Shown: positions 30,661 to 55,600 of the stretch, piece after piece | How positions within the stretch are numbered: the first letter of the stretch is position 1 | How the letters are laid out: each line of letters begins with the position of its first letter | NCBI GenBank assembly: GCA_964036045.1 | Contig: OZ038378.1 | Span: 144,460,001-144,524,000 of the forward strand | Length of the DNA: 64,000 nt | Reading direction: 5' to 3' | Source of the DNA: Eutreptiella sp. 'Long Island Sound 2002' | Lineage: Eukaryota; Protista; Euglenida | The notes under the pieces: model-generated | The model's input: only the letters and a program-made list of their open reading frames with translations | The model's database searches: none | What the model was told of the DNA's origin: nothing | Made by a program: the position numbers and the translations under genes

Positions 30661-31892
30661 TTTGGATTTTCGTACATCTCCTTCCAATGGTTTGCACACT
30701 TCTAATAGTTTGCGACGGGTGGTTCGAACAGGTTCGTATGGGTGGCTGCAAAATTTTCATACAGATTTCCTTATGAGTGCTTCAAATGGATTGTGATGGG
30801 TGGTTTGCACATTCTTGTTTGAGCAACTTTGCAACTCAGCAGCCCAGCAACCTTTTATGCATAGGCGCATGCACAGGGTGCGCTTGATGAATCAACTCTC
30901 GTTGCGACATTCTTGCAAGGGGCACAACTCGGCTCGGAATAAATTCCTGTCTCTCAATGAATTACTGGGATTTGAAACTGAAACACGGTACTCTAGAAGG
31001 TCAAATTTCTTCTGCAATATGTTGCTTGCCATTAAAACCTCTAAAATGGACACTGCACTCAGATGTCATGATTTGCACCACAAAATTCAACAATACAATC
31101 TGCTGGCATAGGAATTTGGCCCAGTCCTGGTAGGGAACTCGACCTGGGACTGACCATTCATCCCGCTGGCCTCAAAACAGGGCACCACGTGTTTGCCAAG
31201 CAATTTAACTTACTGCGGCCTACACGACGCTTGCTGAGAAAAATAGGGATTCCTGGGGGACAGGTAGATAATTCAGATCTAAGATAAGAAGCTGCATCCT
31301 TTACTAAAAACCTCAAATCTGTGGGGCTGTCATTTTTTTTTGGGAATTTCTCGTTCCTAGGAAAACAACTTATCTTGGGTACCCCCTAGATTCTACTCCC
31401 CCGTATTGAATCAGGCTGGTTTTTAGGATCTGGACAATGTTCCCCACAGACATTCGGCAACAATCTAAGCTAAAATTGAGTGACCGTGCCAGGGTGAACT
31501 AAGGAGAATGACGCTCGGCGAATATCCCATGGCCCGTGAGAGAAGCCTTTACTACATGCAGGGGCTTCAACCAGCCATGTGGACTGTATAAACCTTAATG
31601 GGTAATGCTTAGATTTTTGCATGATGTCCTAAATGAGGCATCAGTGAGGGTTTGCGGTATGTTGCAAATTCTATTGCCTTCGGCAAGGCACCTCGAAGAG
31701 GGGAGAAGGACCACCATTGTTGAGTTGCTGAGGATTTAAAACTGCATAAGCAGGTTGTGCCAAAGCCCCCTTGGGAGCCCCCCACCCCCAACACCCAAAT
31801 AGGGTGAAAACCACATAAAGAGGGGCTAAAACATGCTTTACATGGGATATTTGATCATTTTGGATGGTCAGAGTATCAAAAAAACCAGTTCC

Positions 31893-32018
31893 CCAAATTT
31901 CCATATTTGAGCTCCCTAGGCTGGAAAATTGCATCCAAATTTCCATGTTTGAGCTGCCTAGGCTGGAAAACTGCATCCAAATTTCCATGTTTGAGCTGCC
32001 TAGGCTGGAAAACTGCAT
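31893..32018. repeat. 42-bp VNTR, 3 copies (2 copies at 61422-61505)
   Basis: Unit CCAAATTTCCATGTTTGAGCTGCCTAGGCTGGAAAACTGCAT. Confidence 0.92.
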
Positions 32019-32053
32019 AAGCAGGTGGTGCCCTAGCCCACTTGGGAGCCCCG

Positions 32054-32320
32054 AAGGAATGCTGGCTACGTCACGGGTGCACAAGCGGCAGACAAAACAA
32101 AGCGTAGAAAATGTGGCTCGTCAGTGGCCTACAAGACCATAGGTACCTTTCTGTCAAAAGTGAAACGCAAAGATGCCCATGGGTAGTTCACTAAGCAAAC
32201 AAAGACAGTGGGCACGCAGCGGTACGCCTTGAGCCGCCGCCATGCAGGGCCCACAGGATCTCTATTTATGTCATATACTGAGTTCTGTGACAAATGCAAA
32301 CGCCGCCCCCCCCTCCCCCC
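32054..32320. repeat. 3' terminal direct repeat (pLTR-like); partner at 53429-53700
   Basis: Colinear, ~90% identical by eye, from AAGGAATGCTGGCTA to ACAAATG.AAACGCCG.CCCCC; the RT ORF stop lies inside this copy. Confidence 0.88.
32112..32156 (-). ncRNA. Candidate hammerhead-ribozyme-like motif (second copy 53487-53531)
   Basis: Minus strand GAAA-GGUAC-CUA / UGGUCU-UGU-AGGCCA hairpin / CUGACGAG, with palindrome AGGUACCU. Stem II is not formed by the adjacent bases. Confidence 0.45.
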
Positions 32321-32780
32321 GGGGCTGTTGCCCGAAGCGGATGGATGATGACGGGTTCAGCAGGCGGGTAAGGGATTGCAATACAGGAAAATCAAGGCAC
32401 CAGTCGGCGCAAACGTCGGTGCACGGTCCTGGGTGTGGCATGTGCCAGGAGGCATATGCACCGTGGCACCAGTGTGCCGTTGACTGCACCCAGCGGTGCA
32501 GCCTGAAGGAAATAGTATCCCGCGTCGCCGGGAGTGTATATGTGACGTGCATGCACCATTGCAGTGTGGTGTCGACGTCCCATGGTGTTCGGCTCATTAT
32601 GCGGGGCACTGCGGAGTGCAATGCGCGCAAAACTGCTGAACGGGAGTATCCAGACAAGCATGCAATCTGTGCCCACGTTGTATTGCTCAGCAGGCAAGAG
32701 ATCCATGTGTGTAGGAACGGTTCTACGTTGAGTACTACTCCCACAATGATGTTGGATACGCGCTTGCTGTGGCATTTGGG
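32271..32780 (-). pseudogene. C-terminal (thumb) part of the Penelope-like RT
   Basis: IACLSGYSRSAVLRAL resembles the PLE LxxxGYPxxxIxxA motif; joins in frame to KYPVTLQT once 32781-35017 is removed. Confidence 0.7.
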
Positions 32781-35017
32781 TTTGCAAAGGCGGAGCACAA
32801 GAACACTGCACAGAACTTGGGGCAGCAGTACAATGTATCACCAAGACCGGCGATGCCGGCGATAGAATGCTGACCCTGCCCTCCAAGAGAGCCATGGCTG
32901 CCCACATATAAAGCGGACGCAGTCCCAGCGCACAGCGGTCAACGGACGAGACTGACACTACACAAGTACCTGGGAACGAAAAAGTCACCCCCTCAACATG
33001 TGAGACTGCCGCCACCTGAGACGGTGATCATGCTGGACCCAACCACACGCAACCATGGTACCCAATAAAGGGCGGGGTGCAGCATGCAACCCCCCCAAAC
33101 AAAACGAGACACGGTTGGGGTCCGGTGGGCGGACGGCCGAGCCCAGAAGCGGTGCGGCCGCCGTGGGTGGGTGGGCGGGAAAAGACAGAAAATCTGCCTA
33201 AGAAAGGAAGCGCAAACAAAAGTTGAAACGAGGTTCAACTAGTGTTTGCAAAGGCGGAGCACAAGAACACTGCACAGAACTTGGGTATTCATTCTCCGCC
33301 GCAACCCTCCCTGCCCCCCCCCCCCCCCAGCCCTAGCCACGCACTAGTGCCATCAGGAACCCGCTGGGCATAGCGCCGCTGGGGAACCTGAAGGGTTGAA
33401 TCTGAGTCCTAAAACCCCTCTGATTCCTAAACCCCCCCCCCAACCCATAAAACTCCCCATAGGCCTTAGGGCCGGCACCGCAAGTCAAGACAGCCAAAGC
33501 GACGGGCGATACGGGCTGTATGCTCCCGGACCCACACACGGTGATGGCGACACAGCGGCAACAGCATCAGATCCGTCAGCGCCGAGTAGGGCTGCAGGTG
33601 GGCGCCCGGCTGCTCTGCAGCCAAACGGCCACGGCGCCGGGCGCAACTCGGCCAAGCCGAGGCTCACTCAGCAACTCAGCAACGAACCAAGATCCATAAC
33701 ACCGGCCTTAGGGCCAACACTGCAGGTAGCCAGATGGGGCTTTGGCTCAACAAAGTGCTTACGTTGGCGGTGCTGGTGCCGCGACCGTCATTGCTGTTGG
33801 TCCCGTTGCTATCAACGCAAGTGCTCGAAGCATCCACGACTTTAGAGGGCGTGTGGATCGCGTCGCGCATCGAGAGGGCGGCGGCGAGCAACATCTGCGC
33901 CAGTCCTTCAGCGCTGTCGCTGCCAGTGCCGCTGCTCATGTTCCCGCTGTTGCCAATGCCAGTGCTCGAAGTTCCACGCCTGCAGGTGATGTGGCGACAT
34001 AAAGGCAACCACACTGCTGTTGCCACCGCCAGAACTGCTGGTGCCGCTGCTGCTGCCGCCAGCGTCACCGCTGCTGGTCCGACTGCCGCCAATGCCAGAG
34101 TCTGATGGCTCAATACCTGCAGATTGTGATGGCGATACAGAGGGAAAACCACTGCTGCTGCCGCGGCTGCCAGAGCTGCTGGTGTTGCTGGTGCCAGTTT
34201 CACCGCTGCTGGTCCCGCTGCCGCCAACATCGGGTGTTGATGCTCCTACCACTGCACATGGTGACGGCGATAGAGAGGCAACACCACTGTTGCCGTCGCT
34301 GCTGCAGAGCTGCCACCGCGGGTGCTGGTGCTGCCAGTGTCACTGCCCCGGCGGCGGTGGTGAAGGACCCGACCGAGCGCAGCGTCAAACCGTCGTGCGC
34401 AAGCGCCTCCAGCGCAGGGGCCCTCTGCAGCGACGCAAGCAGGCCGCACTGCACGCACTGCACCGCAGCGTCGAGCCCGTTGTTGAGCTCCTGCAGGTCC
34501 GTTGTCGAGAAGGCCTGGGCGTGCGTGTCCACCTCCGTCTTGAAGGCCGCCACCGACTGCGCCACAACCTCCGTCGTGCCGTTGGCCGTGAGCTGCAGGA
34601 CTGCCACAATGTCTGCGACTAGCGTGGTGACCTCGGAGGAGCGGCTTGAGCCGCAGAACCATGTCCACATCGCACTCGACATTGTGCACGACCGCCGGCA
34701 GCAGCGCCGGGCCCCGCCCCGCGTCCGCCAGGGCCTTGACCTCGGCGATGGCGGGGGTCGGGCCCACGAGCACCGCACTCTCCACGGTGGCCAGGCCGCG
34801 GTCAACCAGCCCCTTCTCAACCCCCGCGATCTGCTTCATGCGGTCCAACAAGGAGCCGCAGCACCCGCTTGTCGCCTCAGCATGCTGACCCGCCGGCACC
34901 GGCCCTCGGGCCCATGGGGAGAGGGCAGAACACTACCCCCCCCCCTACAAATTAAAGACAGAAAAACTGCCTAAGAAAGGAAGCGCAAACAAAAGTTGAA
35001 ACGAGGTTCAACTAGTG
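32781..35017. mobile_element. Two head-to-tail modules (464 bp and 1773 bp) inserted in the RT, each ending in a hairpin plus CTAG
   Basis: Shared 41-bp start (32781-32821, 33245-33285) and 64-bp end (33181-33244, 34954-35017). AGTTGAA-ACGAGG-TTCAACT stem then AG|T; TGG flanks both sides. Confidence 0.6.
33676..34899 (-). pseudogene. GC-rich frameshifted ORF of unknown function with Ala-rich repeats
   Basis: Strong coding-like GC3 bias; protein-like helical text MKQIAGVEKGLVDRG ... SEVTTLVADIVAVLQL across a frameshift. Confidence 0.4.
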
Positions 35018-35490
35018 GTCTGCAGGGTCACTGGATATTTAAGGTGCCAGTCTTTTGTTAGACCGGAGGGCTGCGCGTAGATCAATGGGGGGTAGTCCGG
35101 ATGCAAGTGTGTGGTGACTCCCATGGCTGTGAGGGAAGGACCCATGCACGCACCGTTGCATACTTGGTTCTCAAGGTTCATGCATTCACATAGCATAGGG
35201 AGTTGCCAGATCTGGGATAGGGTGTCACGGACCTGTTGCATTTCGGCAGAAGCAGACCTTCCTCGTGCTCCAACCAGGACATTGTCCCTGAACTGAGCTA
35301 AGGACAGAATGTTGCCGCGGGGGGTATGCCACAGGGGGTGTCCTCGCGGCGAAAATTGTAGGTTCCCTAGGGTTCTCATCAGATCAACCCTCTTCTTGGC
35401 ACCCCATATGGACCTCAGATCTGCACTTTGGGCGCTGAACGGGCCTCCCATAGGGATGGCTCCCGTGCGTGCCCATATACGACCGGACGC

Positions 35491-35527
<37 letters not shown>

Positions 35528-35900
35528 TCAGTAGAGAAAAGTATACAAGGTTTTCGAGTTCGGTGTGCCTGATGTGTGTGAAATGTGAGCACGTACCCAT
35601 CCTTGCCCTATCAAGTTTTTGGTTGTCCCTGTGGATGCTCCACACGAGGTTGTTGGCGTTCCAGTGGCGGCGCTTTGCAAGCCACCGAATTGATTCTTGT
35701 AAATCCTTCATAACGGACAGGGGAGAAATGTTATTGAACTGCCCCGAGCAATCCGCCTCACCTATTGTTGTGCATTGCCAGTCGGACAAGTCATGAATCC
35801 ATGGCTGCAAATCACTGATTTTCAGAACAAGAAATGCCCCAAGAATTTCGCTTACAAGCAATCGTAACAGCAGGGTGAATGCCCTGGCGGCTGTCTGCAA
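35018..35900 (-). pseudogene. Penelope-like reverse transcriptase core
   Basis: Motif A GEADCSGQFNNI (~35735-35762), motif B' AIPMGGPFSAQSADL (~35420-35460), motif C QFRDNVLV (35281-35295). Confidence 0.8.
35492..35524. repeat. (TG)16 microsatellite frameshifting the RT
   Basis: Lies between FSLLT and QASGRIWARTGAIPMGG, which are in different frames. Confidence 0.95.
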
Positions 35901-38900
35901 ATAAAATCGCTGTACCTGTGGCTCAACGATAGCTGCAATAGGGCACCATAGTATACACTGTTTTGTGAGAGATTTCGCTTTTCCAGAAGGTACAGCAGGG
36001 GCGAGGCGCGGGCTTTGTTGATGGGCCATTTGTCTTTGCGCATGACGGTGTGGAGTGCTGTCTGTATTTGACCGTTGTCCGATGTTGGTCTGGATGTGTA
36101 TTTTTCTTCTGTGAGGAACTGTACTGTCTGGTCCCATAGCCACTGTCGGCAAAAGGCAAAAAGCATGGTGCCGCTTTTGTCGGCAATGCGTACCGTGGCA
36201 ACCGAGTTTAGGTCAAGTGCAATGTTTTGGACTCGGTGACGGAGGGACGCTTCGCCGTCCCACTCGTCGGCAGGTAGGGCTTCAGAAAGGATGGAGGTGG
36301 GAAAACAATGTTGTACGTGTAACATGTGTGCTAATTTCGTAAGGCTCGTGACGGCATGTGTGCGTGAGCGTGTGCCAGGGCAGGGGAGTGGGTCGGTGGC
36401 GCGCAAGGGTGCCCCATGGTGGAGAATGGTGACCGGTAGTAAGGCAAAGTGGCCGTCAATAAGGCGGACTGGTCCGGCTGCTGACCAGAGGTGCAGGTGT
36501 TGCCGGTCACAGTTGCAAGGGGGGGCACTCTTCGCTTTTTTTCGTGTTTGTTGGATAATCGTTCAAAGGCGCGTCGTAAATTGAGGGGGGTAGAGGAGAC
36601 AACTCTCACATGCGCACGGATGGCTTTACATTCCCAAGAACTGCGGTTGGTACTGCGGACCATGCGGTCGAAGAGTGTTTCCATCCTTGACTTTTGGGGG
36701 GGTAACAGGTGTGGTACAGTCACGTTGGCAGGTCGGCATAGTGGGATGTTATTAAGTGAGCCGCAATGCGTTCCACGTCTTTGTTGAGGATGGCTGCCTA
36801 AACATAGTCACGGTTCCTACGCGCAATATGTGCTTGACGTAGAGTGGTTCTCTACAAGTGGTTCTCTCTCTGTGTGTGTGTTATCTACAAGTTCGACAAG
36901 AACTAGTGTCCAGTGGAGTTCTGTGGTGTTTCGGAGCATGTCATGGAAAGTGGAGTCTTCGGTGCCTGCTTGTGTGGTTGTGACATGTTTCCGTAGACGT
37001 TGTGTCGTAGCCAAATTGGTTTTTCTTGCGTCACAGATGAGTAATTGAGTGTGGATGGCAATATAAATAAGGATGGTAGATGGAGCAACTGATGTGTGCC
37101 AATGGTGTGTGCGTCCAATGGCGCGGAGCATGCGGATCAGTGGATGTGTCTCATATGGCAAAAAGGCCACCTGGTCTTGCAACAGCTGAGCCCAACGGCC
37201 CAGGTCTTTGCTGTCCTGGGCACGACGCATACTGCGGGAATATGATTTATAAAGGAACTCACGATGGGGGTGGGGTTGCCAGAGGCTGGAGAAGCTCTTG
37301 GGATGGTTGAGGAAGTAACAGTGCATGCGAAGTCGTTGGAGTGGTTCGAGGGAAGCGATGGTATCAAGGGAGGCGTACAGGAACCATGGTGTTTGCTGAA
37401 ATTGGGTATATGCAACAGGCGCAGCGTGAGGTGGTGGGAGTGTTGTGTTCCTGACAATCCAGCGACGTGACGTGGCATGGTACTGATAATTTGCTGGGGT
37501 CTCAGGCTCACATATAAGGAGATGTGTGTCGGAGGACAATGGCTCATTGTGTTGGGACCACGGCTCGGTGGGAGTGTGGTATGGTTCGCGTGCAAGTGCC
37601 GCTACTGTGGTCCAGCCGTTGACTGCGTTGATGACTGAGCATAAGTAGCGGGTTACATGCGTGGGTGGGGCGACTGTGATGTGTGGTCGTGTGCATGCGC
37701 GCACTTGTGCGTACAGGGGTGTGTGCTGCTCGTAATGAGTTTGAGCCATGCTTTGAAGTGTGGGTGGATGTGATAGTAAAGGCAACATTGGGTGCATGTG
37801 TGCAGCAGCGAATGCGAAGGGTTTCACTTGGTGTGGTTCCATATGAAATTGTGACATGATAACGGATCGAGGCCCGCCGGGTAGATCCATAGGGCTGTAT
37901 GTGAAAGCAGACTGGAATGGACGCTGTTGAGTGGTCAAGTGGATGTGTTCCGCCAGTGCCAACCGTTGTTGCAGAAGGTGTAAATCATGCAGAATATCAA
38001 TTAGTGACGGCTCTTCCGAAGGTCGTTTGTTGACGAAGTGGCACCAGTCTTTGAAATCGTTGCTCGCGGTGGTGCATGCGCGGAGAAGATCAGCGGGGGA
38101 ACGTTGGCGCCGTGGAGTAGTGATCGAAGTCCTGAGTGAAGCGCTCGCCGGGTGGTGTTCGCGGTTGAGAGTGTTTTGAGTGTGGCTTGCATTTCCTCGG
38201 TGGCATGTGCGGCGACCCAGTGTTGTAGCCTGGTCATATTCATGTCGTTCCATTCAGAGAGTAGTGCATCTAGCAGGTCAGTGTGCCAGGCCTTGGACGA
38301 TTGGTCGGGTTGCAGCGGATCCAGATCAGCCCACCAGCGGCGGGACGCACTACCGCTGGTATTCGTTTGTCTCGTTGCTGCTGGCGTGGTCGGAGGATCG
38401 CTGCGTTCGGTTGTGGAACGTTTACCCGCGCACCGCGTTGGTGTCATGATGGCATCCGCATCCTTGTCCTCTGGGCCGGGTAGCTCAGGGCTCGAATCAA
38501 TTTTGTGATGGGTGGCTCTGTCTACGGTGCCCCGGTCTAGATCGCTTTGAAGGAGTTGGTCGAAGCGTTGTTTTACGGGCGGCCATTCTTTGTTGAGGAA
38601 TTGCTGAAATGAGCGGTGGTGCGGTTGCCAGTCCATTTCCAGGAACTGCTAAAATTTGGTATTTACCCGCTCTGCCGTTGTTAACCGCGAATCTGTTTTT
38701 TCCCGGAAAGACATGAGTGTGGAGACTTTGTTGTTCAACTGCACCAGGTCTGTCTTGCACTCCTCTATTATTCTATGCGAAGACTGCAGTGCCTTTACAT
38801 CCGTTTGGAGCTGAAGTATAGCAGCGTGTTGGCTCTGCTGGTCGCTGGCTAGTGCTGTCAGTTTAGAAGTATGCTCTCCCCGAACTTGAGGTACCCGGCG

Positions 38901-39333
38901 CAAGCAGGACTGCATGTCATGGCCAAAGATACCGCAAAACAGGCAACCACGAGAAATGCTGTCGTCTGGAGGAAAGTTGACTTGAGGATCGCTGGTACTT
39001 CACTGTTGCGTGGTCACTGCAGCCACATCGGAGGCACCAGAGGTGATTCGCCGGAGGAGCAGGAGCAGGGTCGCGTACCTTGGTTTCGTACTCAGGGCAT
39101 ACTTTCATCAAGTGTTCCGTCGAGCCACTGATCAAACAGGCACCTTAATGTTTTCGTTCTTGTTGTACCCGGCACTCGTCCGACCAGTGCAGTTCCCCGC
39201 ATGACCAGCAGGGATCTCCTGGTTGACCGCGACCACGGCGTGGTTCTGCTGCACAATCGGCGGAGGTGGCGTCTTCTCGGTGAGGGCATTCAAACGCTCG
39301 ATGGCCCCCGCGATGACAATGAGAGCAGATGAG
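35900..39333 (-). pseudogene. Long N-terminal region of the element ORF: four CCHC-type knuckles, coiled coil, ~900 aa unknown
   Basis: CSHCHRGGHRAFEC, CWSCGELHWSDEC, CLISGSTEHLMKVC and CLRCGCSDHATVKY share one frame, followed by a heptad region LTALASDQ...LVQLNNKV; scattered stops and frameshifts. Confidence 0.7.
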
Positions 39334-39734
39334 CAAGGCTGAGGTAAACGGGTGTCACGGACCCCGACGACACCCAGACACCCTGAAGGGTGTTTTTTTT
39401 TTTTTTAAAAAAATACCATTTTTTGGTGTTTTTTGTTTTTCTTTTCGCCCAAAATGTTGTTTTTCTACATCCCTATGATCTCAAATGCATTTCCTAGCGC
39501 AACTAACATGTTTTTTAAGGGTTCATAGCATGGTGTCACTCAACAGCTCAACCAATCAACAACACAACCCAGAAAAAAAAACAATGTGTTGCAGATTGGT
39601 TGCTTCGGCCTTGTGACCCGAAGTGGCGTTTTCCCACCATTTTCAATTGTTCCTGCTTGTGTGTTTGCAAATTGATGTATTTCGGTGGCCAAGGTGTTTT
39701 TTAGGTGGGTTTGCCCATGGACTGCCGGAATGCT

Positions 39735-40030
39735 CACTGTTATTTCCCGGTGTGCTCTGGATGGTCACTGTAATTTTGGAATGGTTGCTGTTGTTTCCTG
39801 TTGTTTTCTGTTGCACACCGGATGGTCCTTGTTATTTCCTGGTGCGCTCTGCATGGTCATTGTTATTTCTTGGTGTGCTATGGATGGTTGTTGTTGTTTA
39901 CCGGTGTGCTCTGCATGGTCACTGTCATTTCTTGGTGTATTCTGGTTGGTCGCTGTTGTTTCCTCTTGCACCCTGGATGGTCACTGTCTTTTTCCGGTGC
40001 CCTCTGGATGGTCACTATTATTTCCTGGTC
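39735..40030. repeat. ~31-bp minisatellite (GGATGGTCACTGTTATTTCCCGGTGTGCTCT), ~9 diverged copies per 2.3-kb unit
   Basis: Recurrent (G/C)ATGGT(C/T) ... TTTC motif at ~31-bp spacing. Confidence 0.8.
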
Positions 40031-40262
40031 CGTGCACAAGCAACACATGTCACACACAGGCAAACACAAGGCAAAGCAGTGAAGCGGCACCAAATAAACC
40101 GAGACATTGTGCGCGGGCGCACCTGCCCAAATGCTACGAATGTCTGCCTTAAAAGTCCGGAGGCCACTCGCTGCCCTCTGCCTCCCTCACTGCAGGAGCA
40201 TCATGCTCCTGCCCCAAACAAAACCCCCCCCCCCCCCCCCCCCGCCCTCGTCCTGCTCCACT

Positions 40263-40877
40263 TCACTTCAGAGGGCGGTCTGGCCATCTCCTGCATCGCC
40301 GTCTGCATGCTGCTGAGAATGTTGTCGTTGACTGACCACACTGCGACACCGCCCCGGGCAATGGACCGAGTTTGGGCTGCAGGTGAGATGCCAGCAATGC
40401 AATGTCTCCGTTACCGTGCTGCATCAGGGCTGCCTCATCAATCCATGGCCATGCTGTGAAATCAAACACCCAGGTGGCTTTGGCCACAGGGTGAGTCTCT
40501 TCAAATCTGCTGCTAATTTCTCTACGCAGGTGCTGAATGAAGTCTGTTGCCTGAGATTTAAATGTGGACTCCCCCTCCCTCTGGGCTAGCGGTACGCCCA
40601 GAAATGAACACTTCCCGTCATCCATATCCTTTACGTGATCAGAAAAAAATTGCCACCGCGTGCCTCGGAAAGCAGCCAGCTCCGCGAGCGTGGCTAGGCA
40701 CTTGTGCAGTCCTCTGCTGCAGGGAGGCGCACGTTGCATCCGGCTGGAACGCGAGCGACATGAGACCACAGCAGTGGATGACGTCAGCCACAAAATGCAG
40801 CCCAGCGACGAACGTGTACGTGGTGAGCAGCAGCAATAACTCATCGCGGCGCTCCTTAGTGCAAGGTATGGGGGCAA
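40263..40877 (-). pseudogene. Central/C-terminal hAT transposase fragment (repeated in each of the five full units)
   Basis: TTYTFVAGLHFVADVIHCCGLMSLAFQ and FIQHLRREISSRF..VFDFTAWP..HGNGDIALLASHL resemble ZNF862-type hAT transposases; frameshifted. Confidence 0.75.
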
Positions 40878-43800: not shown

Positions 43801-46800
43801 AATATCATGCCTTGGGGTATGCTACGCGAATGACCCCCAAAAAGGGGGAGTATACGACGCCCGCGCCTGCGCTTGATCTAACAACCCCTCTTCGAGGTGA
43901 TTTTGTCACCACATACATTATGTTGAAAAAGGGGGGCGGGGTTTTGCGTCGTCAAGTGCCCCTAACCCCCCCCCCCCCCACAGACAAGCCTGAGGTAAAC
44001 GGGTGTCACGGACCCCGACAACACCCAGACACCCTGAAGGGTGTTTTTTTTTAAAATACTGTTGTTTGTGTTTTTTTTTCACCCAAAATGTTGTTTTTCT
44101 ACATCCCTATGACCTCAAATGCATTTCCTAGCGCAATTAACATGTTTTTTTAAGGGTTCATAGCATGGTGTCACTCAACAGCTCAACCAATCAACAACAC
44201 AACCCAGAAAAAAAAACAATGTGTTGCAGATTGGTTGCTTCGGCCTTGTGACCCGAAGTGGCGTTTTCCCACCATTTTCAATTGTTCCTGCTTGTGTGTT
44301 TGCAAATTGATGTATTTCGGTGGCCAAGGTGTTTTTTAGGTGGGTTTGCCCATGGACTGCCGGAATGCTCACTGTTATTTCCCGGTGTGCTCTGGATGGT
44401 CACTGTAATTTTGGAATGGTTGCTGTTGTTTCCTGTTGTTTTCTGTTGCACACCGGATGGTCCTTGTTATTTCCTGGTGCGCTCTGCATGGTCATTGTTA
44501 TTTCTTGGTGTGCTATGGATGGTTGTTGTTGTTTACCGGTGTGCTCTGCATGGTCACTGTCATTTCTTGGTGTATTCTGGTTGGTCGCTGTTGTTTCCTC
44601 TTGCACCCTGGATGGTCACTGTCTTTTTCCGGTGCCCTCTGGATGGTCACTATTATTTCCTGGTCCGTGCACAAGCAACACATGTCACACACAGGCAAAC
44701 ACAAGGCAAAGCAGTGAAGCTGCACCAAATAAACCGAGACATTGTGCGCGGGCGCACCTGCCCAAATGCTACGAATGTCTGCCTTAAAAGTCCGGAGGCC
44801 ACTCGCTGCCCTCTGCCTCCCTCACTGCAGGAGCATCATGCTCCTGCCCCAAACAAAAAAACTTCCCCCCCCCCCCCCCCGCCCTCGTCCTGCTCCACTT
44901 CGCTTCGCAACCGCTTCAGAGGGCGGTCTGGCCATCTCCTGCATCGCCGTCTGCATGCTGCTGAGAATGTTGTCGTTGACTGACCACACTGCGACACCGC
45001 CCCGGGCAATGGACCGAGTTTGGGCTGCAGGTGAGATGCCAGCAATGCAATGTCTCCGTTACCGTGCTGCATCAGGGCTGCCTCATCAATCCATGGCCAT
45101 GCTGTGAAATCAAACACCCAGGTGGCTTTGGCCACAGGGTGAGTCTCTTCAAATCTGCTGCTAATTTCTCTACGCAGGTGCTGAATGAAGTCTGTTGCCT
45201 GAGATTTAAATGTGGACTCCCCCTCCCTCTGGGCTAGCGGTACGCCCAGAAATGAACACTTCCCGTCATCCATATCCTTTACGTGATCAGAAAAAAACAG
45301 CCACCGCGTGCCTCGGAAAGCAGCCAGCTCCGCGAGCGTGTCCAGGCACTTGTGCAGTCCTCTGCTGCAGGGAGGCGCACGTTGCATCCGGCTGGAACAC
45401 GAGCGACATGAGACCACAGCAGTGGATGACGTCAGCCACAAAATGCAGCCCAGCGACGAACGTGTACGTGGTGAGCAGCAGCAATAACTCATCGCGGCGC
45501 TCCTTAGTGCAAGGTATGGGGGCAAGGCAAAAGTGAGCCCTCCCTAGCCCCTAAAGTGGTGCCCCCAATCTTTGGGAAGAATGCCGCTGCCCTCGAGGGT
45601 CGCCTAACCAAGGATCAAAAATTCTATTGCCTTCGGCAGTGCACCTCAAAGAGACGGTGACAGTCAGCCAATCAGTCCCTTAGCCAGGCCAGCAGTCAGT
45701 AAGACAGGAACACACAGTTTGGGTTTTTTGTCCGTGGCAGACGCGGCCCCAAGTAGTGGGGGGATTGTTCACTTTAGGGCAAGCAGTGGCCGAACGGTGA
45801 TGAAGCTGACCTTTTGGTCGGCGGTTCCAACCCCGATCGGGCAAATATGGCACCGCTGCTGCCGCCGACAGTCAGCCGACCAGGATGCGAACTGCCGACC
45901 GAAACTTTTGCGTCGGCTGCATTACCATTCGACCGGCGGTGGTGTGACAGTGATATGCCTCCCCACTGCTTGGAGCCTTTTGAGCGAAAAATTTTGACCC
46001 CCCCCCCACCCCACCCCTCAAAAAAGTGATATCTTGTTTTAGGGGCTAGAGGCCTCAGAATCGAAAAATCCATTGGGGGATGGTCTTATTGGCCAAAATA
46101 ATGATTTTACAAGGGGTTAGACATCCAATATCATGCCTTGGGGTATGCTACGCGAATGACCCCCAAAAAGGGGGAGTATACGACGCCCGCGCCTGCGCTT
46201 GATCTAACAACCCCTCTTCGAGGTGATTTTGTCACCACATACATTATGTTGAAAAAGGGGGGCGGGGTTTTGCGTCGTCAAGTGCCCCTAACCCCCCCCC
46301 CCCCCACAGACAAGCCTGAGGTAAACGGGTGTCACGGACCCCGACAACACCCAGACACCCTGAAGGGTGTTTTTTTTTAAAATACTGTTGTTTGTGTTTT
46401 TTTTTCACCCAAAATGTTGTTTTTCTACATCCCTATGACCTCAAATGCATTTCCTAGCGCAATTAACATGTTTTTTTAAGGGTTCATAGCATGGTGTCAC
46501 TCAACAGCTCAACCAATCAACAACACAACCCAAAAAAAAAAACAATGTGTTGCAGATTGGTTGCTTCGGCCTTGTGACCCGAAGTGGCGTTTTCCCACCA
46601 TTTTCAATTGTTCCTGCTTGTGTGTTTGCAAATTGATGTATTTCGGTGGCCAAGGTGTTTTTTAGGTGGGTTTGCCCATGGACTGCCGGAATGCTCACTG
46701 TTATTTCCCGGTGTGCTCTGGATGGTCACTGTAATTTTGGAATGGTTGCTGTTGTTTCCTGTTGTTTTCTGTTGCACACCGGATGGTCCTTGTTATTTCC

Positions 46801-49800
46801 TGGTGCGCTCTGCATGGTCATTGTTATTTCTTGGTGTGCTATGGATGGTTGTTGTTGTTTACCGGTGTGCTCTGCATGGTCACTGTCATTTCTTGGTGTA
46901 TTGTGGTTGGTCGCTGTTGTTTCCTCTTGCACCCTGGATGGTCACTGTCTTTTTCCGGTGCCCTCTGGATGGTCACTATTATTTCCTGGTCCGTGCACAA
47001 GCAACACATGTCACACACAGGCAAACACAAGGCAAAGCAGTGAAGCTGCACCAAATAAACCGAGACATTGTGCGCGGGCGCACCTGCCCAAATGCTACGA
47101 ATGTCTGCCTTAAAAGTCCGGAGGCCACTCGCTGCCCTCTGCCTCCCTCACTGCAGGAGCATCATGCTCCTGCCCCAAACAAAAAAACTCCCCCCCCCCC
47201 CCCGCCCTCGTCCTGCTCCACTTCGTTTCGCAACCGCTTCAGAGGGCGGTCTGGCCATCTCCTGCATCGCCGTCTGCATGCTGCTGAGAATGTTGTCGTT
47301 GACTGACCACACTGCGACACCGCCCCGGGCAATGGACCGAGTTTGGGCTGCAGGTGAGATGCCAGCAATGCAATGTCTCCGTTACCGTGCTGCATCAGGG
47401 CTGCCTCATCAATCCATGGCCATGCTGTGAAATCAAACACCCAGGTGGCTTTGGCCACAGGGTGAGTCTCTTCAAATCTGCTGCTAATTTCTCTACGCAG
47501 GTGCTGAATGAAGTCTGTTGCCTGAGATTTAAATGTGGACTCCCCCTCCCTCTGGGCTAGCGGTACGCCCAGAAATGAACACTTCCCGTCATCCATATCC
47601 TTTACGTGATCAGAAAAAAACAGCCACCGCGTGCCTCGGAAAGCAGCCAGCTCCGCGAGCGTGTCCAGGCACTTGTGCAGTCCTCTGCTGCAGGGAGGCG
47701 CACGTTGCATCCGGCTGGAACGCGAGCGACATGAGACCACAGCAGTGGATGGCGTCAGCCACAAAATGCAGCCCAGCGACGAACGTGTACGTGGTGAGCA
47801 GCAGCAATAACTCATCGCGGCGCTCCTTAGTGCAAGGTATGGGGGCAAGGCAAAAGTGAGCCCTCCCTAGCCCCTAAAGTGGTGCCCCCAATCTTTGGGA
47901 AGAATGCCGCTGCCCTCGAGGGTCGCCTAACCAAGGATCAAAAATTCTATTGCCTTCGGCAGTGCACCTCAAAGAGACGCTGACAGTCAGCCAATCAGTC
48001 CCTTAGCCAGGCCAGCAGTCAGTAAGACAGGAACACACAGTTTGGGTTTTTTGTCCGTGGCAGACGCGGCCCCAAGTAGTGGGGGGATTGTTCACTTTAG
48101 TGCAAGCAGTGGCCGAACGGTGATGAAGCTGACCTTTTGGTCGGCGGTTCCAACCCCGATCGGGCAAATATGGCACCGCTGCTGCCGCCGACAGTCAGCC
48201 GACCAGGATGCGAACTGCCGACCGAAACTTTTGCGTCGGCTGCATTACCATTCGACCGGCGGTGGTGTGACAGTGATATGCCTCCCCACTGCTTGGAGCC
48301 TTTTGAGCGAAAAATTTTGACCCCCCCCCACCCCACCCCTCAAAAAAGTGATATCTTGTTTTAGGGGCTAGAGGCCTCAGAATCAAAAAATCCATTGGGG
48401 GATGGTCTTATTGGCCAAAATAATGATTTTACAAGGGGTTAGACATCCAATATCATGCCTTGGGGTATGCTACGCGAATGACCCCCAAAAAGGGGGAGTA
48501 TACGACGCCCGCGCCTGCGCTTGATCTAACAACCCCTCTTCGAGGTGATTTTGTCACCACATACATTATGTTGAAAAAGGGGGGCGGGGTTTTGCGTCGT
48601 CAAGTGCCCCTAACCCCCCCCCCCCCCACAGACAAGCCTGAGGTAAACGGGTGTCACGGACCCCGACAACACCCAGACACCCTGAAGGGTGTTTTTTTTT
48701 TAAAATACTGTTGTTTGTGTTTTTTTTTCACCCAAAATGTTGTTTTTCTACATCCCTATGACCTCAAATGCATTTCCTAGCGCAATTAACATGTTTTTTT
48801 AAGGGTTCATAGCATGGTGTCACTCAACAGCTCAACCAATCAACAACACAACCCAGAAAAAAAAACAATGTGTTGCAGATTGGTTGCTTCGGCCTTGTGA
48901 CCCGAAGTGGCGTTTTCCCACCATTTTCAATTGTTCCTGCTTGTGTGTTTGCAAATTGATGTATTTCGGTGGCCAAGGTGTTTTTTAGGTGGGTTTGCCC
49001 ATGGACTGCCGGAATGCTCACTGTTATTTCCCGGTGTGCTCTGGATGGTCACTGTATTTTTGGAATGGTTGCTGTTGTTTCCTGTTGTTTTCTGTTGCAC
49101 ACCGGATGGTCCTTGTTATTTCCTGGTGCGCTCTGCATGGTCATTGTTATTTCTTGGTGTGCTATGGATGGTTGTTGTTGTTTACCGGTGTGCTCTGCAT
49201 GGTCACTGTCATTTCTTGGTGTATTCTGGTTGGTCGCTGTTGTTTCCTCTTGCACCCTGGATGGTCACTGTCTTTTTCCGGTGCCCTCTGGATGGTCACT
49301 ATTATTTCCTGGTCCGTGCACAAGCAACACATGTCACACACAGGCAAACACAAGGCAAAGCAGTGAAGCTGCACCAAATAAACCGAGACATTGTGCGCGG
49401 GCGCACCTGCCCAAATGCTACGAATGTCTGCCTTAAAAGTCCGGAGGCCACTCGCTGCCCTCTGCCTCCCTCACTGCAGGAGCATCATGCTCCTGCCCCA
49501 AACAAAAAAACTTTTCCCCCTCCCCCCCCTCGCCCTCGTCCTGCTCGACTTCGCTTCGCAACCGCTTCAGAGGGCGGTCTGGCCATCTCCTGCGTCGCCG
49601 TCTGCATGCTGCTGAGAATGTTGTCGTTGACTGACCACACTGCGACACCGCCCCGGGCAATGGACCGAGTTTGGGCTGCAGGTGAGATGCCAGCAATGCA
49701 ATGTCTCCGTTACCGTGCTGCATCAGGGCTGCCTCATCAGTCCATGGCCATGCTGTGAAATCAAACACCCAGGTGGCTTTGGCCACAGGGTGAGTCTCTT

Positions 49801-51619
49801 CAAATCTGCTGCTAATTTCTCTACGCAGGTGCTGAATGAAGTCTGTTGCCTGAGATTTAAATGTGGACTCCCCCTCCCTCTGGGCTAGCGGTACGCCCAG
49901 AAATGAACACTTCCCGTCATCCATATCCTTTACGTGCTCAGAAAAAAACAGCCACCGCGTGCCTCGGAAAGCAGCCAGCTCCGCGAGCGTGTCCAGGCAC
50001 TTGTGCAGTCCTCTGCTGCAGGGAGGCGCACGTTGCATCCGGCTGGAACGCGAGCGACATGAGACCACAGCAGTGGATGACGTCAGCCACAAAATGCAGC
50101 CCAGCGACGAACGTGTACGTGGTGAGCAGCAGCAATAACTCATCGCGGCGCTCCTTAGTGCAAGGTATGGGGGCAAGGCAAAAGTGAGCCCTCCCTAGCC
50201 CCTAAAGTGGTGCCCCCAATCTTTGGGAAGAATGCCGCTGCCCTCGAGGGTCGCCTAACCAAGGATCAAAAATTCTATTGCCTTCGGCAGTGCACCTCAA
50301 AGAGACGCTGACAGTCAGCCAATCAGTCCCTTAGCCAGGCCAGCAGTCAGTAAGACAGGAACACACAGTTTGGGTTTTTTGTCCGTGGCAGACGCGGCCC
50401 CAAGTAGTGGGGGGATTGTTCACTTTAGGGCAAGCAGTGGCCGAGCGGTGATGAAGCTGACCTTTTGGTCGGCGGTTCCAACCCCGATCGGGCAAATATG
50501 GCACCGCTGCTGCCGCCGACAGTCAGCCGACCGGGATGCGAACTGCCGACCGAAACTTTTGCGTCGGCTGCATTACCATTCGACCGGCGGTGGTGTGACA
50601 GTGATATGCCTCCCCACTGCTTGGAGCCTTTTGAGCGAAAAATTTTGACCCCCCCCCACCCCACCCCTCAAAAAAGTGATATCTTGTTTTAGGGGCTAGA
50701 GGCCTCAGAATCAAAAAATCCATTGGGGGATGGTCTTATTGGCCAAAATAATGATTTTACAAGGGGTTAGACATCCAATATCATGCCTTGGGGTATGCTA
50801 CGCGAATGACCCCCAAAAAGGGGGAGTATACGACGCCCGCGCCTGCGCTTGATCTAACAACCCCTCTTCGAGGTGATTTTGTCACCACATACATTATGTT
50901 GAAAAAGGGGGGCGGGGTTTTGCGTCGTCAAATGCCCCTAACCCCCCCCCCCCCCACAGACAAGCCTGAGGTAAACGGGTGTCACGGACCCCGACAACAC
51001 CCAGACACCCTGAAGGGTGTTTTTTTTTTAAAATACTATTGTTTGTGTTTTTTTTTCACCCAAAATGTTGTTTTTCTACATCCCTATGACCTCAAATGCA
51101 TTTCCTAGCGCAATTAACATGTTTTTTTAAGGGTTCATAGCATGGTGTCACTCAACAGCTCAACCAATCAACAACACAACCCAGAAAAAAAAACAATGTG
51201 TTGCAGATTGGTTGCTTCGGCCTTGTGACCCGAAGTGGCGTTTTCCCACCATTTTCAATTGTTCCTGCTTGTGTGTTTGCAAATTGATGTATTCCGGTGG
51301 CCAAGGTGTTTTTTAGGTGGGTTTGCCCATGGAGTGCCGGAATGCTCACTGTTATTTCCCGGTGTGCTCTGGATGGTCACTGTAATTTTGGAATGGTTGC
51401 TGTTGTTTCCTGTTGTTTTCTGTTGCACTTTGGATGGTCCTTGTTATTTCCTGGTGCGCTCTGCATGGTCATTGTTATTTCTTGGTGTGCTCTGGATGGT
51501 CGCTCTTGTTTCCCGGTGCGCTCTGGATGGTCACTGTCATTTCTTGGTGTATTCTGGTTGGTCGCTGTTGTTTCCTCTTGCACCCTGGATGGTCACTGTT
51601 TTTTTTCTGGTACCCTTTG

Positions 51620-52684
51620 GATGGTCACTATTATTTCCTGGTCCGTGCACAAGCAACACATGTCACACACAGGCAAACACAAGGCAAAGCAGTGAAGCTG
51701 CACCAAATAAACTGAAACATTGTGCGCGGCTGCAAGAATGCCACGGGCAGAGAACCGGGAGCGGTAGCCCGGAAGGACATTGCCACCAGAGAGCTCGATC
51801 ATAAACAGATCCCCAGGAAATACCTGCAGGGAACCCCCGCTCTTCTCCCATTGGCACACCGCTCGGAACGCTGTCAGGACGCCGTCGCGTACGTGTGGCG
51901 GCAGGGTCCCTAAGGCAGAGGACTTCTGACCATTGGATACCCACATTGCCAGTGCAACATGGTGGGGACCTGAGTGATCATGCTTCTTCACGGCTGAGGC
52001 GCGGAAGTTGCTAGTGCCCTGGGCCCATTCAGGGGAGCCACCAAGCTCGGGGAACATCCGACAAGCAGCGCTTTGCATGAGGTCGTCGATGTATTTCAAC
52101 CACGGCCGCCCCTTTTGCCATTGCTGGCGTAACAGGCGCCGCTGGCCTCGGTTTGGTGGTGGTGGTGGTGGAGAGGCGCAAGCCTTGCAATGAATTGCGT
52201 CACCAACTGCGGTTGTGCAGTGTGCATGAGCGGTGCGCGTGCATTGGGCACATTGTACCACTGGACTTGTCAAAAGACAGTGACGGACCAGGCACACGCA
52301 CATGTAGCAGTGGAACTTGTGTTGTACATCAACAGTACCACATAGTTCATGGGTCTGCTTGCCACAGGAAACACATTTCTTAAGGTGCCCTCCAAACTCA
52401 CTATCGCAGGCACCGCAAACGCGGTTGGCACCGGCAAGACCGCTGGGGATGGATGGTGCTGCGCGGGGTTTTGCAGCAACGGTGGCATTACGGGGGGCTA
52501 CCGTGTTCAGGTCGGTAGTGAAACGCCAGCCGTCGTGGGCACCATTGCGCTTGGCCTCCCGGCTGACTTGGGCGTCATGCAACTTGACACCCTGCTCCCC
52601 CAGGGAACGAGTGGCAGCCAAGACGGATTTGTGGAAGGACCACTCGGCGCCCTCCACGTCTTTCTTCACCCAGACACCAGGCAT
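51620..52684 (-). pseudogene. N-terminal part of hAT transposase: two PHD-like fingers, TTF-type zinc finger, DUF4371-like region
   Basis: CGAC..CVSC..HELC..CYMC and C..C..CAQC..HAHC..CKAC; QQWQKGRPWLKY..AACRMF..GTSNF..VKKHDHSGPHH; probable start MPGVWVKK at 52684. Confidence 0.82.
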
Positions 52685-55600
52685 CAACAAAACATACGCA
52701 AGCAAGAAGGGGAAACAACGGACATGTTCTACGTATTTGCAATGCACGTACCACATCCTATGTCCCACATCCCATACCACACATCCCTGAGCCCACATCC
52801 CATCTACTTTCTTTTTGTCACCTCCTTTGCACCTCTACCTGCTATGTGATCGCCGATTGCACGTATACATACCATGACATATGGACGTAACATCCCAAAT
52901 CCCACATCTCCTATATATGTGTGGCCCCCATTGCACCTCTATTTGCCATTTCATCATAGATTTGCATGCACAATTGCACATGTGTGTTCCCCATTGTAGA
53001 GCTACTTGGTACGTCATGCATGAGGGAAAAAAACAAAAGAACTCTCTGCTAGAAGACGTCGGAGAAACAAGGAATGCCAAAAATATCCAAAAAACAATGG
53101 TTCCTTGGTACCACAAGATGCGTTTGTACCTGATACCACCATGAAAAAACAAAAAAACACCAAAAAACATGAAAAAACACCAAACCGCGGCCAAAAACGG
53201 CCAAAAACGGCAAAAAAACAAAAAAACGCGTTTTTTTGTAAAACACCCGACCTCCGTACCCACTTAGCTCAGGCTTGCAGATGAGAGGATGTTTAGGCGC
53301 CATGGCGAACAGACTGGGTTTTGGGGGTACTGATAGGGGTGAACAAGAGGAACTCAGTGTAGACAATGATAGAGATCAGCCAAACGGACGCTCCACTTAG
53401 GAGATATGCCAATGGCCTGACTTCCCCCAAGGAATGCTGGCTATGTCACGTGTGCACAAGCGGCAGACAAAACAAAGCGCAGAAAATGTGGCTCGTCAGT
53501 GGCCTACAAGACCATAGGTACCTTTCTGTCAAAAGTGAAACGCAAAGATGCCCGCGGGTAGTTCACTGAGCAAACAAAGACAGTAGGCACGCAGGAGTAC
53601 GCCTTGAGCCGCCGCCATGCAGGGCCCACGGGATCTCTATTTATGTCATATACTGAGTTTTGTGACAAATGGAAACGCCGACCCCCCCCCCCTCCCCCCA
53701 CCCACCCCCAACACCCAAATAGGGTGAAAACCACATAACAAGGGGCTACAACATCCTTTACGTAGGATATTTGATACTTTTGGATGGTCAAAATATCAAA
53801 GAAAAAAACTGTTTCAGAAATTTCCATTTTTGAGCTGCCGAGGCTGTAAAACTGCACCAGCAGGTTGTGCCCCGGCCCCCTTGGGACCGCCCCCCCACCC
53901 AAATAGGGTGAAAAACACACAAAAAGTGTCTGAAACATGCTCTACATAGCATATTTCATCATTGTGAGCGGTCACAATATCAATTTTTTTTGCAAAGATT
54001 TCCCATTTTTGACCTGTAGAGGGTGGAAAACTGCTTAGGCAGTTCGTGCACACACCAAACACAAACACAAACACAAATTTTTGGGGGGGCATGGCTCAGG
54101 CTAGATGGGCCCAATGGTCACTACGTGGGCCCCCATTGGTGCTCAAGTACCCGTATTGTCACCAAATGATCACCCAAACCCATCCTAGGGGCAACAGAAG
54201 GGTTTCGGAAAAAGTCGAAATGTGAAAAATTTTCAAGTATCACTACACAACCTACGCAACAGCAATTTTGAGGCTTTCGGGGGACCCATGGCACGGGCTA
54301 CATAGGCCTAGCAGCCACGACATGGGTCCCCACGTGTGCTCAAGTACCCGTATTGTCACCAAATGATCACCCAGACGCATCCTAGGGGCAACGGAAGGGT
54401 TTTATGAACAATCCAATTTCAAAAAACTTTCACGAGCCACTAAACAGCATGTCCGGTGTGAAAACGGTTCAGTCCTCAGTGGCAAGGGGCGGCTCAATCA
54501 TGGTCGGTAATAGATATTCGATACCCCCGCCCAGGCAATTCTAGCCAATGTTCCAAGTGTCAGCAAACAATCATATGGGCGGGGGGGGGGCGACTGGGGG
54601 TACCTGGAGTTGGGACCCAAGACCCCCGCTATGGGTTAGGGGGTCCATATACAAAACAAAGTTCTTCAGGACCCAGGTCCAAATACACACACAGCGGCCA
54701 GTATTGTGGCAGTGGCAGTGACAGTGGCATGCCTACTCTGAGAGAGCAGAGGGTGTGCGGAGGGGGCAGAGGCTGCTGGCCAGACATACCCACTCTTTTT
54801 GGCCCAGGGCAGTAGCCCGTGCGGACATACACGCAGCATCATTGAATGTGCTTTATTCCGCTCCTTCCTCTGAGTGCCAATGCGCATATACTGGAGCCCC
54901 CGCCCCCCTGGCAATCTCCCCCGTTAGCGCGCGACGGTCTCCCGGGTGGGTGGGGCGGCGGTCGTCAGGTGACGGTCTCCCAAAAGGGGGTGGGGGGTTG
55001 CAAGGGTATTGCAAGGCATGGGGATAACGTCCGGTGACTCCGGAGACTTGGGTGATTCAACCACCACAGCCTCTAGCCTTGAGGGTTGAGCGCTCTCATG
55101 ATCCATTGGAGTGACCCCACCAGGGCGTATGTACCCAATGTGATAAAACTGTGGCCCATTTGGTGAAGGGCCCACAACAGTGGCCAACACATGTGCACCA
55201 AGTGTGCGTGAGTGGTACCGTAAACGGTCACAGGCAGAAAACATCTTGCGTCTGAAATATCAACATAACACACCCATACGGCAGCTTTGGAGAGAGAATA
55301 TCACAGAACACATGCAGGTGATTGATTTGAAGCAACGGGAAGCAATGCAAGGCCATGTGTAAGGCAGATGGGCAACACAAACCAGCGCAATAGATATTGA
55401 CCCGAAAAACATGGAAGTGAGGGTCTCCCGTGGGGGGGGGGGGGGTTACACGGAGCATCACTCCTTCCTCTGTGTGCCATTTCGCATACACTGCTAAAAA
55501 AAAAAAGAATGGCAAAAAATTCGGCTTTGTGCAAGATACAAGTGCAAATGTGACACACCAGGTGTGATCCTCGCACAGTACAATGCAGCCTATCAACAAA

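Follow-up and report, generated by a model that had tools for sequence, protein, structure and literature searches.

A decayed Penelope-like element, probably of the Naiad/Chlamys type with an N-terminal GIY-YIG nuclease, in the euglenid Eutreptiella

INTRODUCTION

Can a Penelope-like element (PLE) of a euglenid integrate at homopolymers without a nuclease of its own? The question is raised by a 64,000-nucleotide stretch of Eutreptiella sp. 'Long Island Sound 2002' (contig OZ038378.1, positions 144,460,001 to 144,524,000; hereafter the window, in whose own coordinates all positions are given), in which the minus strand from 53697 to 32049 holds a single interrupted retroelement, about 5.46 kb long once two inserts are removed. 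GIY-YIG is the nuclease of PLEs, and a preliminary description drawn from the letters alone took this element for an endonuclease-less PLE in which Gag-like zinc knuckles and a coiled coil are fused to a reverse transcriptase (RT), possibly representing an undescribed clade. The analysis reported here leads to a different view of the nuclease: the element is very probably a decayed copy of an autonomous permuted PLE, that is, one with an N-terminal endonuclease (EN), of the Naiad/Chlamys type and with a Chlamys-like nuclease.

Naiad and Chlamys elements carry an N-terminal GIY-YIG domain, a CxC linker leading to the RT, a DKG-type motif and an insertion in the RT fingers (PMC8557442); they have pseudo-long terminal repeats (pseudo-LTRs or pLTRs), are 5'-truncated, lack a canonical hammerhead ribozyme and target microsatellites (Craig, Yushenova, Rodriguez & Arkhipova 2021, PMC8557442). 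Chlamys elements occur in green algae, Chara, Selaginella and Physarum, measure 3.3-8.2 kb and insert at (CA)n and (C)n; their EN is without the CCHH and CX2-5CxxC motifs and keeps R, H, E and N, and their DK motif has a variable third residue (PMC8557442). One of them, Chlamys-2_cBra (Chara type), has an upstream open reading frame (ORF) of gag-like zf-CCHC type and a canonical 3' hammerhead (PMC8557442), and some PLE types are shown with a frameshift-separated ORF1 that has a coiled coil (Fig. 1 legend, PMC8557442).

RESULTS

The element family encodes an N-terminal GIY-YIG nuclease

Searching the genome (2.28 Gb, 2,317 contigs) at the DNA level recovered copies of the element at 80-86% identity, together with a sister family at about 65%. 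Inspection by eye of ORF2 in the relatives revealed, some 400 residues upstream of the RT motifs, the pattern IY-x10-YAGKT...QRLRKH...ELVD...YRERxWW...ND, placing a nuclease at residues ~245-322 and the RT motifs at ~645-870 of a 1,128-aa relative. Pfam scans of the whole window ORF pieces and of intact ORF2s gave neither RVT nor GIY-YIG, the latter being visible to Pfam only when the EN segments of many members were scanned singly. Twenty diverse members were taken from the 1,071 non-redundant matches of an exhaustive profile search, and the EN segments of 12 of them matched PF01541 GIY-YIG (best E 1.9e-5; E 0.012 for the intact relative), with no second Pfam family recurring among the 20. 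When these segments were aligned, G and R were invariant and R, L, K, H, T, E, W, N and P near-invariant, with the catalytic spacing of GIY-YIG domains; no conserved Cys was found within or upstream of the core, so that both the CCHH and the CX2-5CxxC motifs are absent. An AlphaFold model of the domain (pLDDT 75) had GIY-YIG proteins as its twelve best Foldseek matches in the PDB, the superposition on I-TevI giving a target-normalised TM of 0.78 and a root mean square deviation of 2.2 Å over 94 columns, with UvrC next. An ESM Atlas feature search with ORF2 led to clusters in which GIY-YIG, RVT_1 and HTH_animal/DUF8422, families associated with PLEs in the last case, are found.

By Pfam match, conserved residues and fold, the family encodes its own N-terminal GIY-YIG nuclease, the activity of which is predicted. 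The domain is complete in several copies of the window's own family (L021, L022, L023 and L027). In the window copy a remnant persists at 37071-36883, comprising the first 77 residues, in which IY..YAG has become IY..DAR and QRLRKH is intact, while a deletion has taken out the half with the catalytic E and N. The position upstream of the RT, the change of YAG to DAR and the loss of the E/N half explain why the nuclease had escaped notice. The earlier claim that the element has no endonuclease thus fails on the Pfam matches in 12 of 20 members, the conserved catalytic residues, the I-TevI/UvrC fold and the remnant in the window itself; nor does the proposal of an undescribed clade integrating without a nuclease hold, since an N-terminal GIY-YIG domain followed by a CxC linker is the published architecture of Naiad and Chlamys.

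The RT resembles telomerase and has an unusual motif C

Between nuclease and RT, the linker motif RPxCxC is invariant in the family alignment and also present in distant members (window CxC at 36517-36509). The DKG-type motif reads ADKS in the window's and sister families and VDKG in distant members, the window ADK lying at 36184-36176. Motifs of the RT itself were recognized by eye as K..WRPI, E-x-D-C-x-x-Q-F-N (motif A), IPMGGPFSAQ (motif B) and QFRDN (motif C), of which the last three lie in the window at ~35765-35727, 35463-35428 and 35292-35281 (FRDN), respectively. Some 90 residues of family sequence lie between the motif A Asp and motif B; the model gives them two helices with strands in between, a candidate for the fingers insertion.

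A 609-residue AlphaFold model of the RT, built with 60 family sequences (pLDDT 77, pTM 0.76), retrieved TERT at ranks 1-16 of a Foldseek search of the PDB (E 5e-9 to 1e-4), followed by group II intron RTs, DRT9, retron RTs and viral RNA-dependent RNA polymerases. The VIA structure comparison gave Z 15.9-12.0 for TERT, 12.2 for the RT of a diversity-generating retroelement (DGR), 11.1 for a group II RT and 10.3 for R2, the alignments with TERT extending over ~290-415 residues; neither LINE-1 ORF2p nor a retroviral RT was among the 50 best matches of either comparison. Structure neighbours in the ESM Atlas were streptophyte hypothetical proteins, TERT, PLE-type clusters and clusters that combine GIY-YIG and RVT_1. 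Judged by its model, the RT would belong with TERT and PLEs and not with those of long interspersed nuclear elements (LINEs), TERT reaching Z 15.9 and R2 only 10.3. Together with terminal repeats that act as pseudo-LTRs and an ORF that ends in the repeat, this best match to TERT bears out the Penelope-like identity proposed in the preliminary description.

Motif C is D-N in 36 of the 42 members that cover it and D-D in none. The D-N form recurs in a family that is 36% identical and in a member derived from a transcriptome; in the model the motif A Asp closes a strand and the motif C D-N occupies a beta-hairpin turn, positions typical of catalytic residues. A comparison of three copies gave a dN/dS of ~0.15 for ORF2, which shows purifying selection, and one protein cluster contains several ORF2 predictions with an identical length of 1,194 aa. 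Because of this selection and these shared lengths, the D-N reverse transcriptase is presumably functional. The transcriptome-derived member (P0235, in the cluster of P0009; QFRDN) comes from an MMETSP data set, indicating that at least one lineage is transcribed in some sampled organism. A search of sequencing runs returned DNA data sets only and no RNA data set.

Anatomy of the window copy

The element is bounded by a direct repeat of 274 bp (53697-53424 and 32320-32049; 94% identity by blastn), in agreement with the ~270 bp first reported, and its reconstructed length of ~5.46 kb, against 5,552 bp including both repeats in the full-length relative L022, likewise agrees with the earlier estimate of ~5.5 kb. 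Alignment with three closer copies resolved it into four blocks (53698-53290, 39333-36877, 36849-35017 and 32786-32049), the gaps between which correspond to insert 1 after 53290, a loss of ~100 bp at 36877/36849 and insert 2 after 35017. The features are as follows.

53424-53697, minus strand: 5' pseudo-LTR, 274 bp, with a G-run at its start (aligned to the 3' repeat by blastn; corresponds to the pLTRs in relatives)
53304-53423, minus strand: 5' untranslated leader, from the pLTR to the ORF1 ATG (collinear with L022 and L023)
53278-53303, minus strand: start of ORF1, ATG at 53303, MAPKHPLI, running into the first CTCATCTG copy (53285-53278)
39334-53277, unstranded: insert 1, foreign to the element, 13,944 bp
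38004-39333, minus strand: remaining ORF1, with the knuckles, then a helical region and a C-terminal part whose fold is unknown (tblastn to the intact ORF1 of L024, 64-65% identity; motif scan; weak Pfam zf-CCHC match)
36878-38253, minus strand: N-terminal part of ORF2, shifted to -1 with respect to ORF1, whose last ~250 nt it overlaps
36849-36877, minus strand: site of the ~100-bp deletion, where relatives have ~128 bp (alignment break against all relatives)
35017-36848, minus strand: ORF2 linker and RT fingers/palm, with several frameshifts (motifs; model and TERT matches from an intact relative)
32787-35016, unstranded: insert 2, foreign to the element, 2,230 bp
32274-32786, minus strand: RT thumb and C-terminal region of ORF2 (tblastn to ORF2 residues 953-1123)
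32049-32320, minus strand: 3' pseudo-LTR, from the G-run encoding PRGEGG to the end ...CCTTCGGGG

Six-frame translation of the minus strand showed the start MAPKHPLIC at 53303 to be interrupted and to resume as CSHCHRGGHRAFEC near 39330; when insert 1 and one duplication are taken out, MAPKHPLIC is in frame with SHCHRGGHRAFEC, just as had been described. Removal of insert 2 also rejoins the RT palm and thumb, as claimed: the insert splits the two at a site just ahead of the first thumb helix in the AlphaFold model of the relative, and residues 955 and 953 of the relative's ORF2 meet across the gap. The palm and thumb halves of the window copy are collinear and in different reading frames. The coding region stops 47 nt within the 3' repeat, so the ending of the ORF inside the terminal repeat was correctly seen. 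In outline, and almost to the nucleotide, the earlier reconstruction is right. In intact relatives the same layout appears as a unit of ~5.28 kb with a 274-bp partial tandem copy, the pseudo-LTR, ahead of it. What does not stand is the single ORF of roughly 1600 codons; the relatives have two ORFs overlapping in -1. All proteins analysed were natural sequences, neither consensus nor repaired.

Besides the ~100-bp deletion near 36877/36849, the window copy has premature stops at 39147-39145 and 36819-36817 and about five frameshifts; within the ORF1 remainder, these comprise the in-frame stop at 39147-39145 and a frameshift near 38997. The copy is dead, decayed and non-functional, and the locus is without functional consequence.

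Two ORFs and a -1 overlap

Intact relatives have two ORFs, ORF2 overlapping the end of ORF1 in the -1 frame. In sister-family copies ORF1 extends for ~450 aa from its Met and comprises five CX2CX3-4HX4C knuckles, a helical region and ~200 residues of unknown fold, and ORF2 has ~1,130-1,200 aa. The zinc knuckles seen at the outset are real, three intact CCHC motifs being present in the window (39327-39286, 39210-39172 and 38945-38904) along with two degenerate ones, and five in intact relatives. The general Pfam scan gave weak matches to coiled-coil families, and an ESM Atlas search with ORF1 returned no usable match. The -1 overlap is common to the window's family, the sister family and a third family whose ORF2 is 36% identical. 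In each of the three families ORF1 and ORF2 are laid out in this way between the same repeats, and the knuckle ORF is therefore part of the element, not of a neighbour; its collinearity with ORF2 across families 36-86% alike upholds the earlier assignment of the Gag-like region to the same element.

Just 5' of the ORF1 stop, L024 and L025 have the slippery heptamer U UUA AAC in register, and the third-family copy L063 has U UUA AAU in register at the corresponding place. After a -1 slip at the heptamer, reading enters the ORF2 frame exactly. These in-register heptamers point to a likely expression of ORF2 by -1 frameshifting of Gag-Pol type in the sister families, as far as nucleotide sequence can indicate.

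The two inserts

Insert 1 (53277-39334) lies between 8-bp duplications CTCATCTG at 53285-53278 and 39333-39326 and has imperfect terminal inverted repeats of ~20 bp. It consists mostly of a 2.32-kb tandem array (~39400-51700) of ~5.2 units that are ~99-100% identical, each unit holding a 31-bp minisatellite. An ORF of 413 aa (52834-51596, minus strand) has a weak Pfam match to zf-C17orf113; neither a transposase nor a Dimer_Tnp_hAT domain was found in the insert by Pfam. The label hAT-like is given only by the 8-bp duplication, the short imperfect terminal inverted repeats and the weak zf-C17orf113 match.

Insert 2 (35016-32787, 2,230 bp) is flanked by the 8-bp duplications TGCAGACC/TGCAAACC and belongs to a mobile element that is young and of high copy number. 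Full-length copies with exact ends occur by the dozen elsewhere in the genome at 97-99% identity, and first-look candidates number ~1,560. No terminal inverted repeats or coding domain could be recognized in it. Its GC content is 61-65%, and it contains internal 135-bp tandem repeats.

Insertion sites, truncation and repeats

Copies of the element lie at internal positions on many contigs and are dispersed over many chromosomes. The 3' junctions run into at least 7 G in 12 of 29 cases and into at least 12 G in 5 of 29, and three 5'-truncated copies have long G-runs directly ahead of them. The window copy itself lies within the G-run of a host repeat whose halves flank it. These observations support the interstitial location and the association with G/C homopolymers that had been noted, and are suggestive of a (G)n/(C)n target preference above a high background of G-runs. 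The flanks at 31700-32048 and 53698-54100 are a repeated host unit, ~85% alike and ending in a G-run, and 42-bp tandem repeats occupy 31893-32018 of the host flank unit.

Searches with a 372-bp 3'-end query yielded many matches that are 5'-truncated or span nothing but the repeat, which is itself a partial tandem copy of the element's 3' end. Many genome matches (query 101-372) begin at the first base of the pLTR, in the G-run, with no leader after it, and would be solo repeats or truncations at the G-run. Such ends hint at cDNA having been joined to the target through microhomology between G/C tracts.

No hammerhead was detected with Rfam at E up to 1 over 31500-54500 or at E up to 10 over the 3' repeat, and an Rfam scan of the whole window gave nothing. 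Both pLTRs (32100-32160 and 53470-53530) contain GAAA, the palindromic GGTACC and CTGACGA in that order, a set of words resembling a hammerhead core; it had no Rfam match and no convincing helix II could be drawn from it.

Host and abundance

A 24-mer that we take to be the Euglena gracilis spliced leader occurs 5,458 times in the genome, against no occurrence of the reversed control, which confirms the euglenid host; the pattern is not in the 64-kb window. The family is abundant: the 372-bp 3'-end query had ~1,500 first-look candidates or more, of which 40 were scored, and the non-redundant protein fragments exceed 1,000.

DISCUSSION

The family described here agrees with Chlamys in the order GIY-YIG, CxC and RT, in an EN that is without CCHH and retains R, H, E and N, in the DK motif and perhaps in a long insertion between motifs A and B, as well as in its pseudo-LTRs, 5' truncation, size range, insertion at (C)n and want of a canonical hammerhead. 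An upstream CCHC ORF is shared with Chlamys-2_cBra, which, however, has the canonical 3' hammerhead not detected here. Further differences from Chlamys are the D-N motif C, an ORF1 with five knuckles and a helical region that overlaps ORF2 in -1, with heptamers in two families, and the host, a euglenid (Discoba), a group unreported in PMC8557442. With the metazoan Naiads the family has in common the permuted EN-RT order, CxC, a DKA/DKG-type motif, a putative fingers insertion, pLTRs, the targeting of microsatellites or homopolymers and no canonical hammerhead, whereas Naiads have CCHH in the GIY-YIG core and an upstream CX2-5CxxC, both missing here, and are single-ORF elements of 3.4-4.4 kb with (TA)n targets. 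TERT is the best structural match of the RT, including an insertion between motifs A and B; unlike TERT, the protein has D-N in place of D-D and no detected TEN or RBD domain, and it belongs to a mobile element that also has a nuclease and a Gag-like ORF. The CCHC-bearing ORF1, the polymerase ORF in the -1 frame and X XXY YYZ heptamers near the ORF1 stop recall the Gag-Pol arrangement of retroviruses and some LINEs. The frameshifting proposed here is putative and differs from the retroviral kind in that no stimulatory structure was detected and that the window's family lacks a heptamer.

Our current working model is that -1 ribosomal frameshifting would yield an ORF1-ORF2 fusion carrying ORF2, that the GIY-YIG nuclease would nick the chromosome in or next to (C)n/(G)n tracts, and that the G-rich 3' end of the RNA would pair with the nicked tract, from which the RT would carry out target-primed reverse transcription of the RNA. 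Truncation at the 5' end, which is frequent and often falls on an internal G-run, would give rise to solo repeats and to the pseudo-LTR layout. The window copy would have been inserted in the G-run of the host repeat and would then have undergone ~6% repeat divergence and acquired stops, frameshifts and the nuclease deletion, after all of which both DNA-type elements would have inserted into it.

Several observations weigh against this interpretation. Placement with Naiad/Chlamys rests on architecture and motifs. Word-based protein searches, single and profile, gave matches from one ENA source only, in which one contig was traced (ERZ25074135), the 150 listed among the 1,071 matches of the exhaustive profile search were all fragments of the same family, and a metagenome scan found no relatives outside the same source. 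Pfam RVT_1 matched only 1 of 60 RT segments, and neither single nor profile sequence searches of the PDB returned anything meaningful. The E-values of the EN model in Foldseek are weak (0.02-0.5), because the domain is small (~90 residues), but no unrelated fold comes in among the matches. A D-N motif C would be expected to impair a canonical RT. At the site homologous to the heptamer the window's own family has A ACA AAC, which is not a canonical slippery heptamer, and minimum free energy folding revealed no frameshift-stimulating hairpin downstream (z 0.02). As to targets, G-runs are frequent in this genome (24 runs of G7+ in 40.5 kb of flanks) and the element is itself G-ended; no target duplication could be read for it.

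How far do these points favour another origin? That no sequence search links the family to a non-Euglena protein, that the RT is too divergent for Pfam, that motif C is D-N throughout and that the multi-knuckle ORF1 and its -1 overlap are constant from family to family would all suit a separate deep euglenozoan PLE lineage, which either gained an N-terminal GIY-YIG domain independently or branches outside Naiad/Chlamys. Such a lineage would have had to arrive at the CxC linker, the DK/DKG motif, a putative long A-B insertion, an EN with neither CCHH nor CX2-5CxxC, (C)n targets and the absence of a canonical hammerhead, all in common with Chlamys; convergence on every one of these details is unlikely, and we regard this origin as decidedly improbable. 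A bolder form of the permuted-PLE interpretation would see in the family a distinct ancient branch of permuted PLEs, equipped with a working D-N RT and a retrovirus-like Gag-Pol -1 fusion; we think this unlikely.

The two remaining explanations dispense with the nuclease or with the PLE. An EN-deficient element akin to Athena/Coprina, integrating at homopolymers without a nuclease, would share the PLE-type RT and would fit a window copy in which Pfam recognizes no nuclease and no domain lies C-terminal to the RT. But Athena/Coprina elements are nuclease-less and reside at chromosome ends capped by telomeric repeats, whereas the present family has an upstream GIY-YIG domain by Pfam, conserved residues and fold, found also in the window's family, with its first 77 residues retained in the window copy, and its copies are dispersed on many chromosomes and not terminal; we give this explanation next to no credence. 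A LINE-like or LTR-like retrotransposon might equally display a Gag-like ORF1, a pol-like ORF2 and direct terminal repeats, and both the CCHC ORF1 with its two-ORF -1 frameshift layout, reminiscent of retroviral and LINE arrangements, and the 274-bp repeats, comparable with short LTRs, could be read in that way. Against it, Pfam detected no protease, RNase H, integrase, APE or RLE domain, the RT model is ~5 Z units nearer TERT than R2 with no LINE-1 ORF2p or retroviral RT among the 50 best matches, and the ORF ends in a repeat that merely duplicates the element's 3' end as a partial tandem copy, leaving a very slight chance that the element is of LINE or LTR kind. A decayed permuted PLE of the Naiad/Chlamys type accordingly remains our preferred interpretation.

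The architecture is known already from green algae and invertebrates; an abundant Chlamys-type PLE is new for Euglena. We found no paper combining Euglena with Penelope-like elements in substance, and euglenids and Discoba are unmentioned by Craig et al. (PMC8557442). In the chromosome-level annotation of E. gracilis, about one-third of the genome is assigned to unclassified repeats and about one-fifth to one-third to LTR elements, with no PLE class (PMC11252322); the family has probably been counted there under 'LTR' and 'unknown'. The host range of permuted N-terminal GIY-YIG PLEs is thereby seen to reach Euglenozoa, which supports an old and widespread clade. Under the bolder view given above, which we hold to be unlikely, the green-algal ancestor of the plastid may have brought these elements into euglenids, since Chlamys is otherwise found mainly in the green lineage. 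For specialists, two traits deserve attention, namely the conserved D-N motif C under purifying selection and the in-register heptamers, which suggest frameshifting of Gag-Pol type in a PLE.

Elsewhere in the window, a weak tblastn match at 3841-4058 on the minus strand (35-37% identity, E 1e-4) to ORF2 residues 684-754, the region of motif A, may mark the remains of a further, distantly related member of this PLE superfamily.

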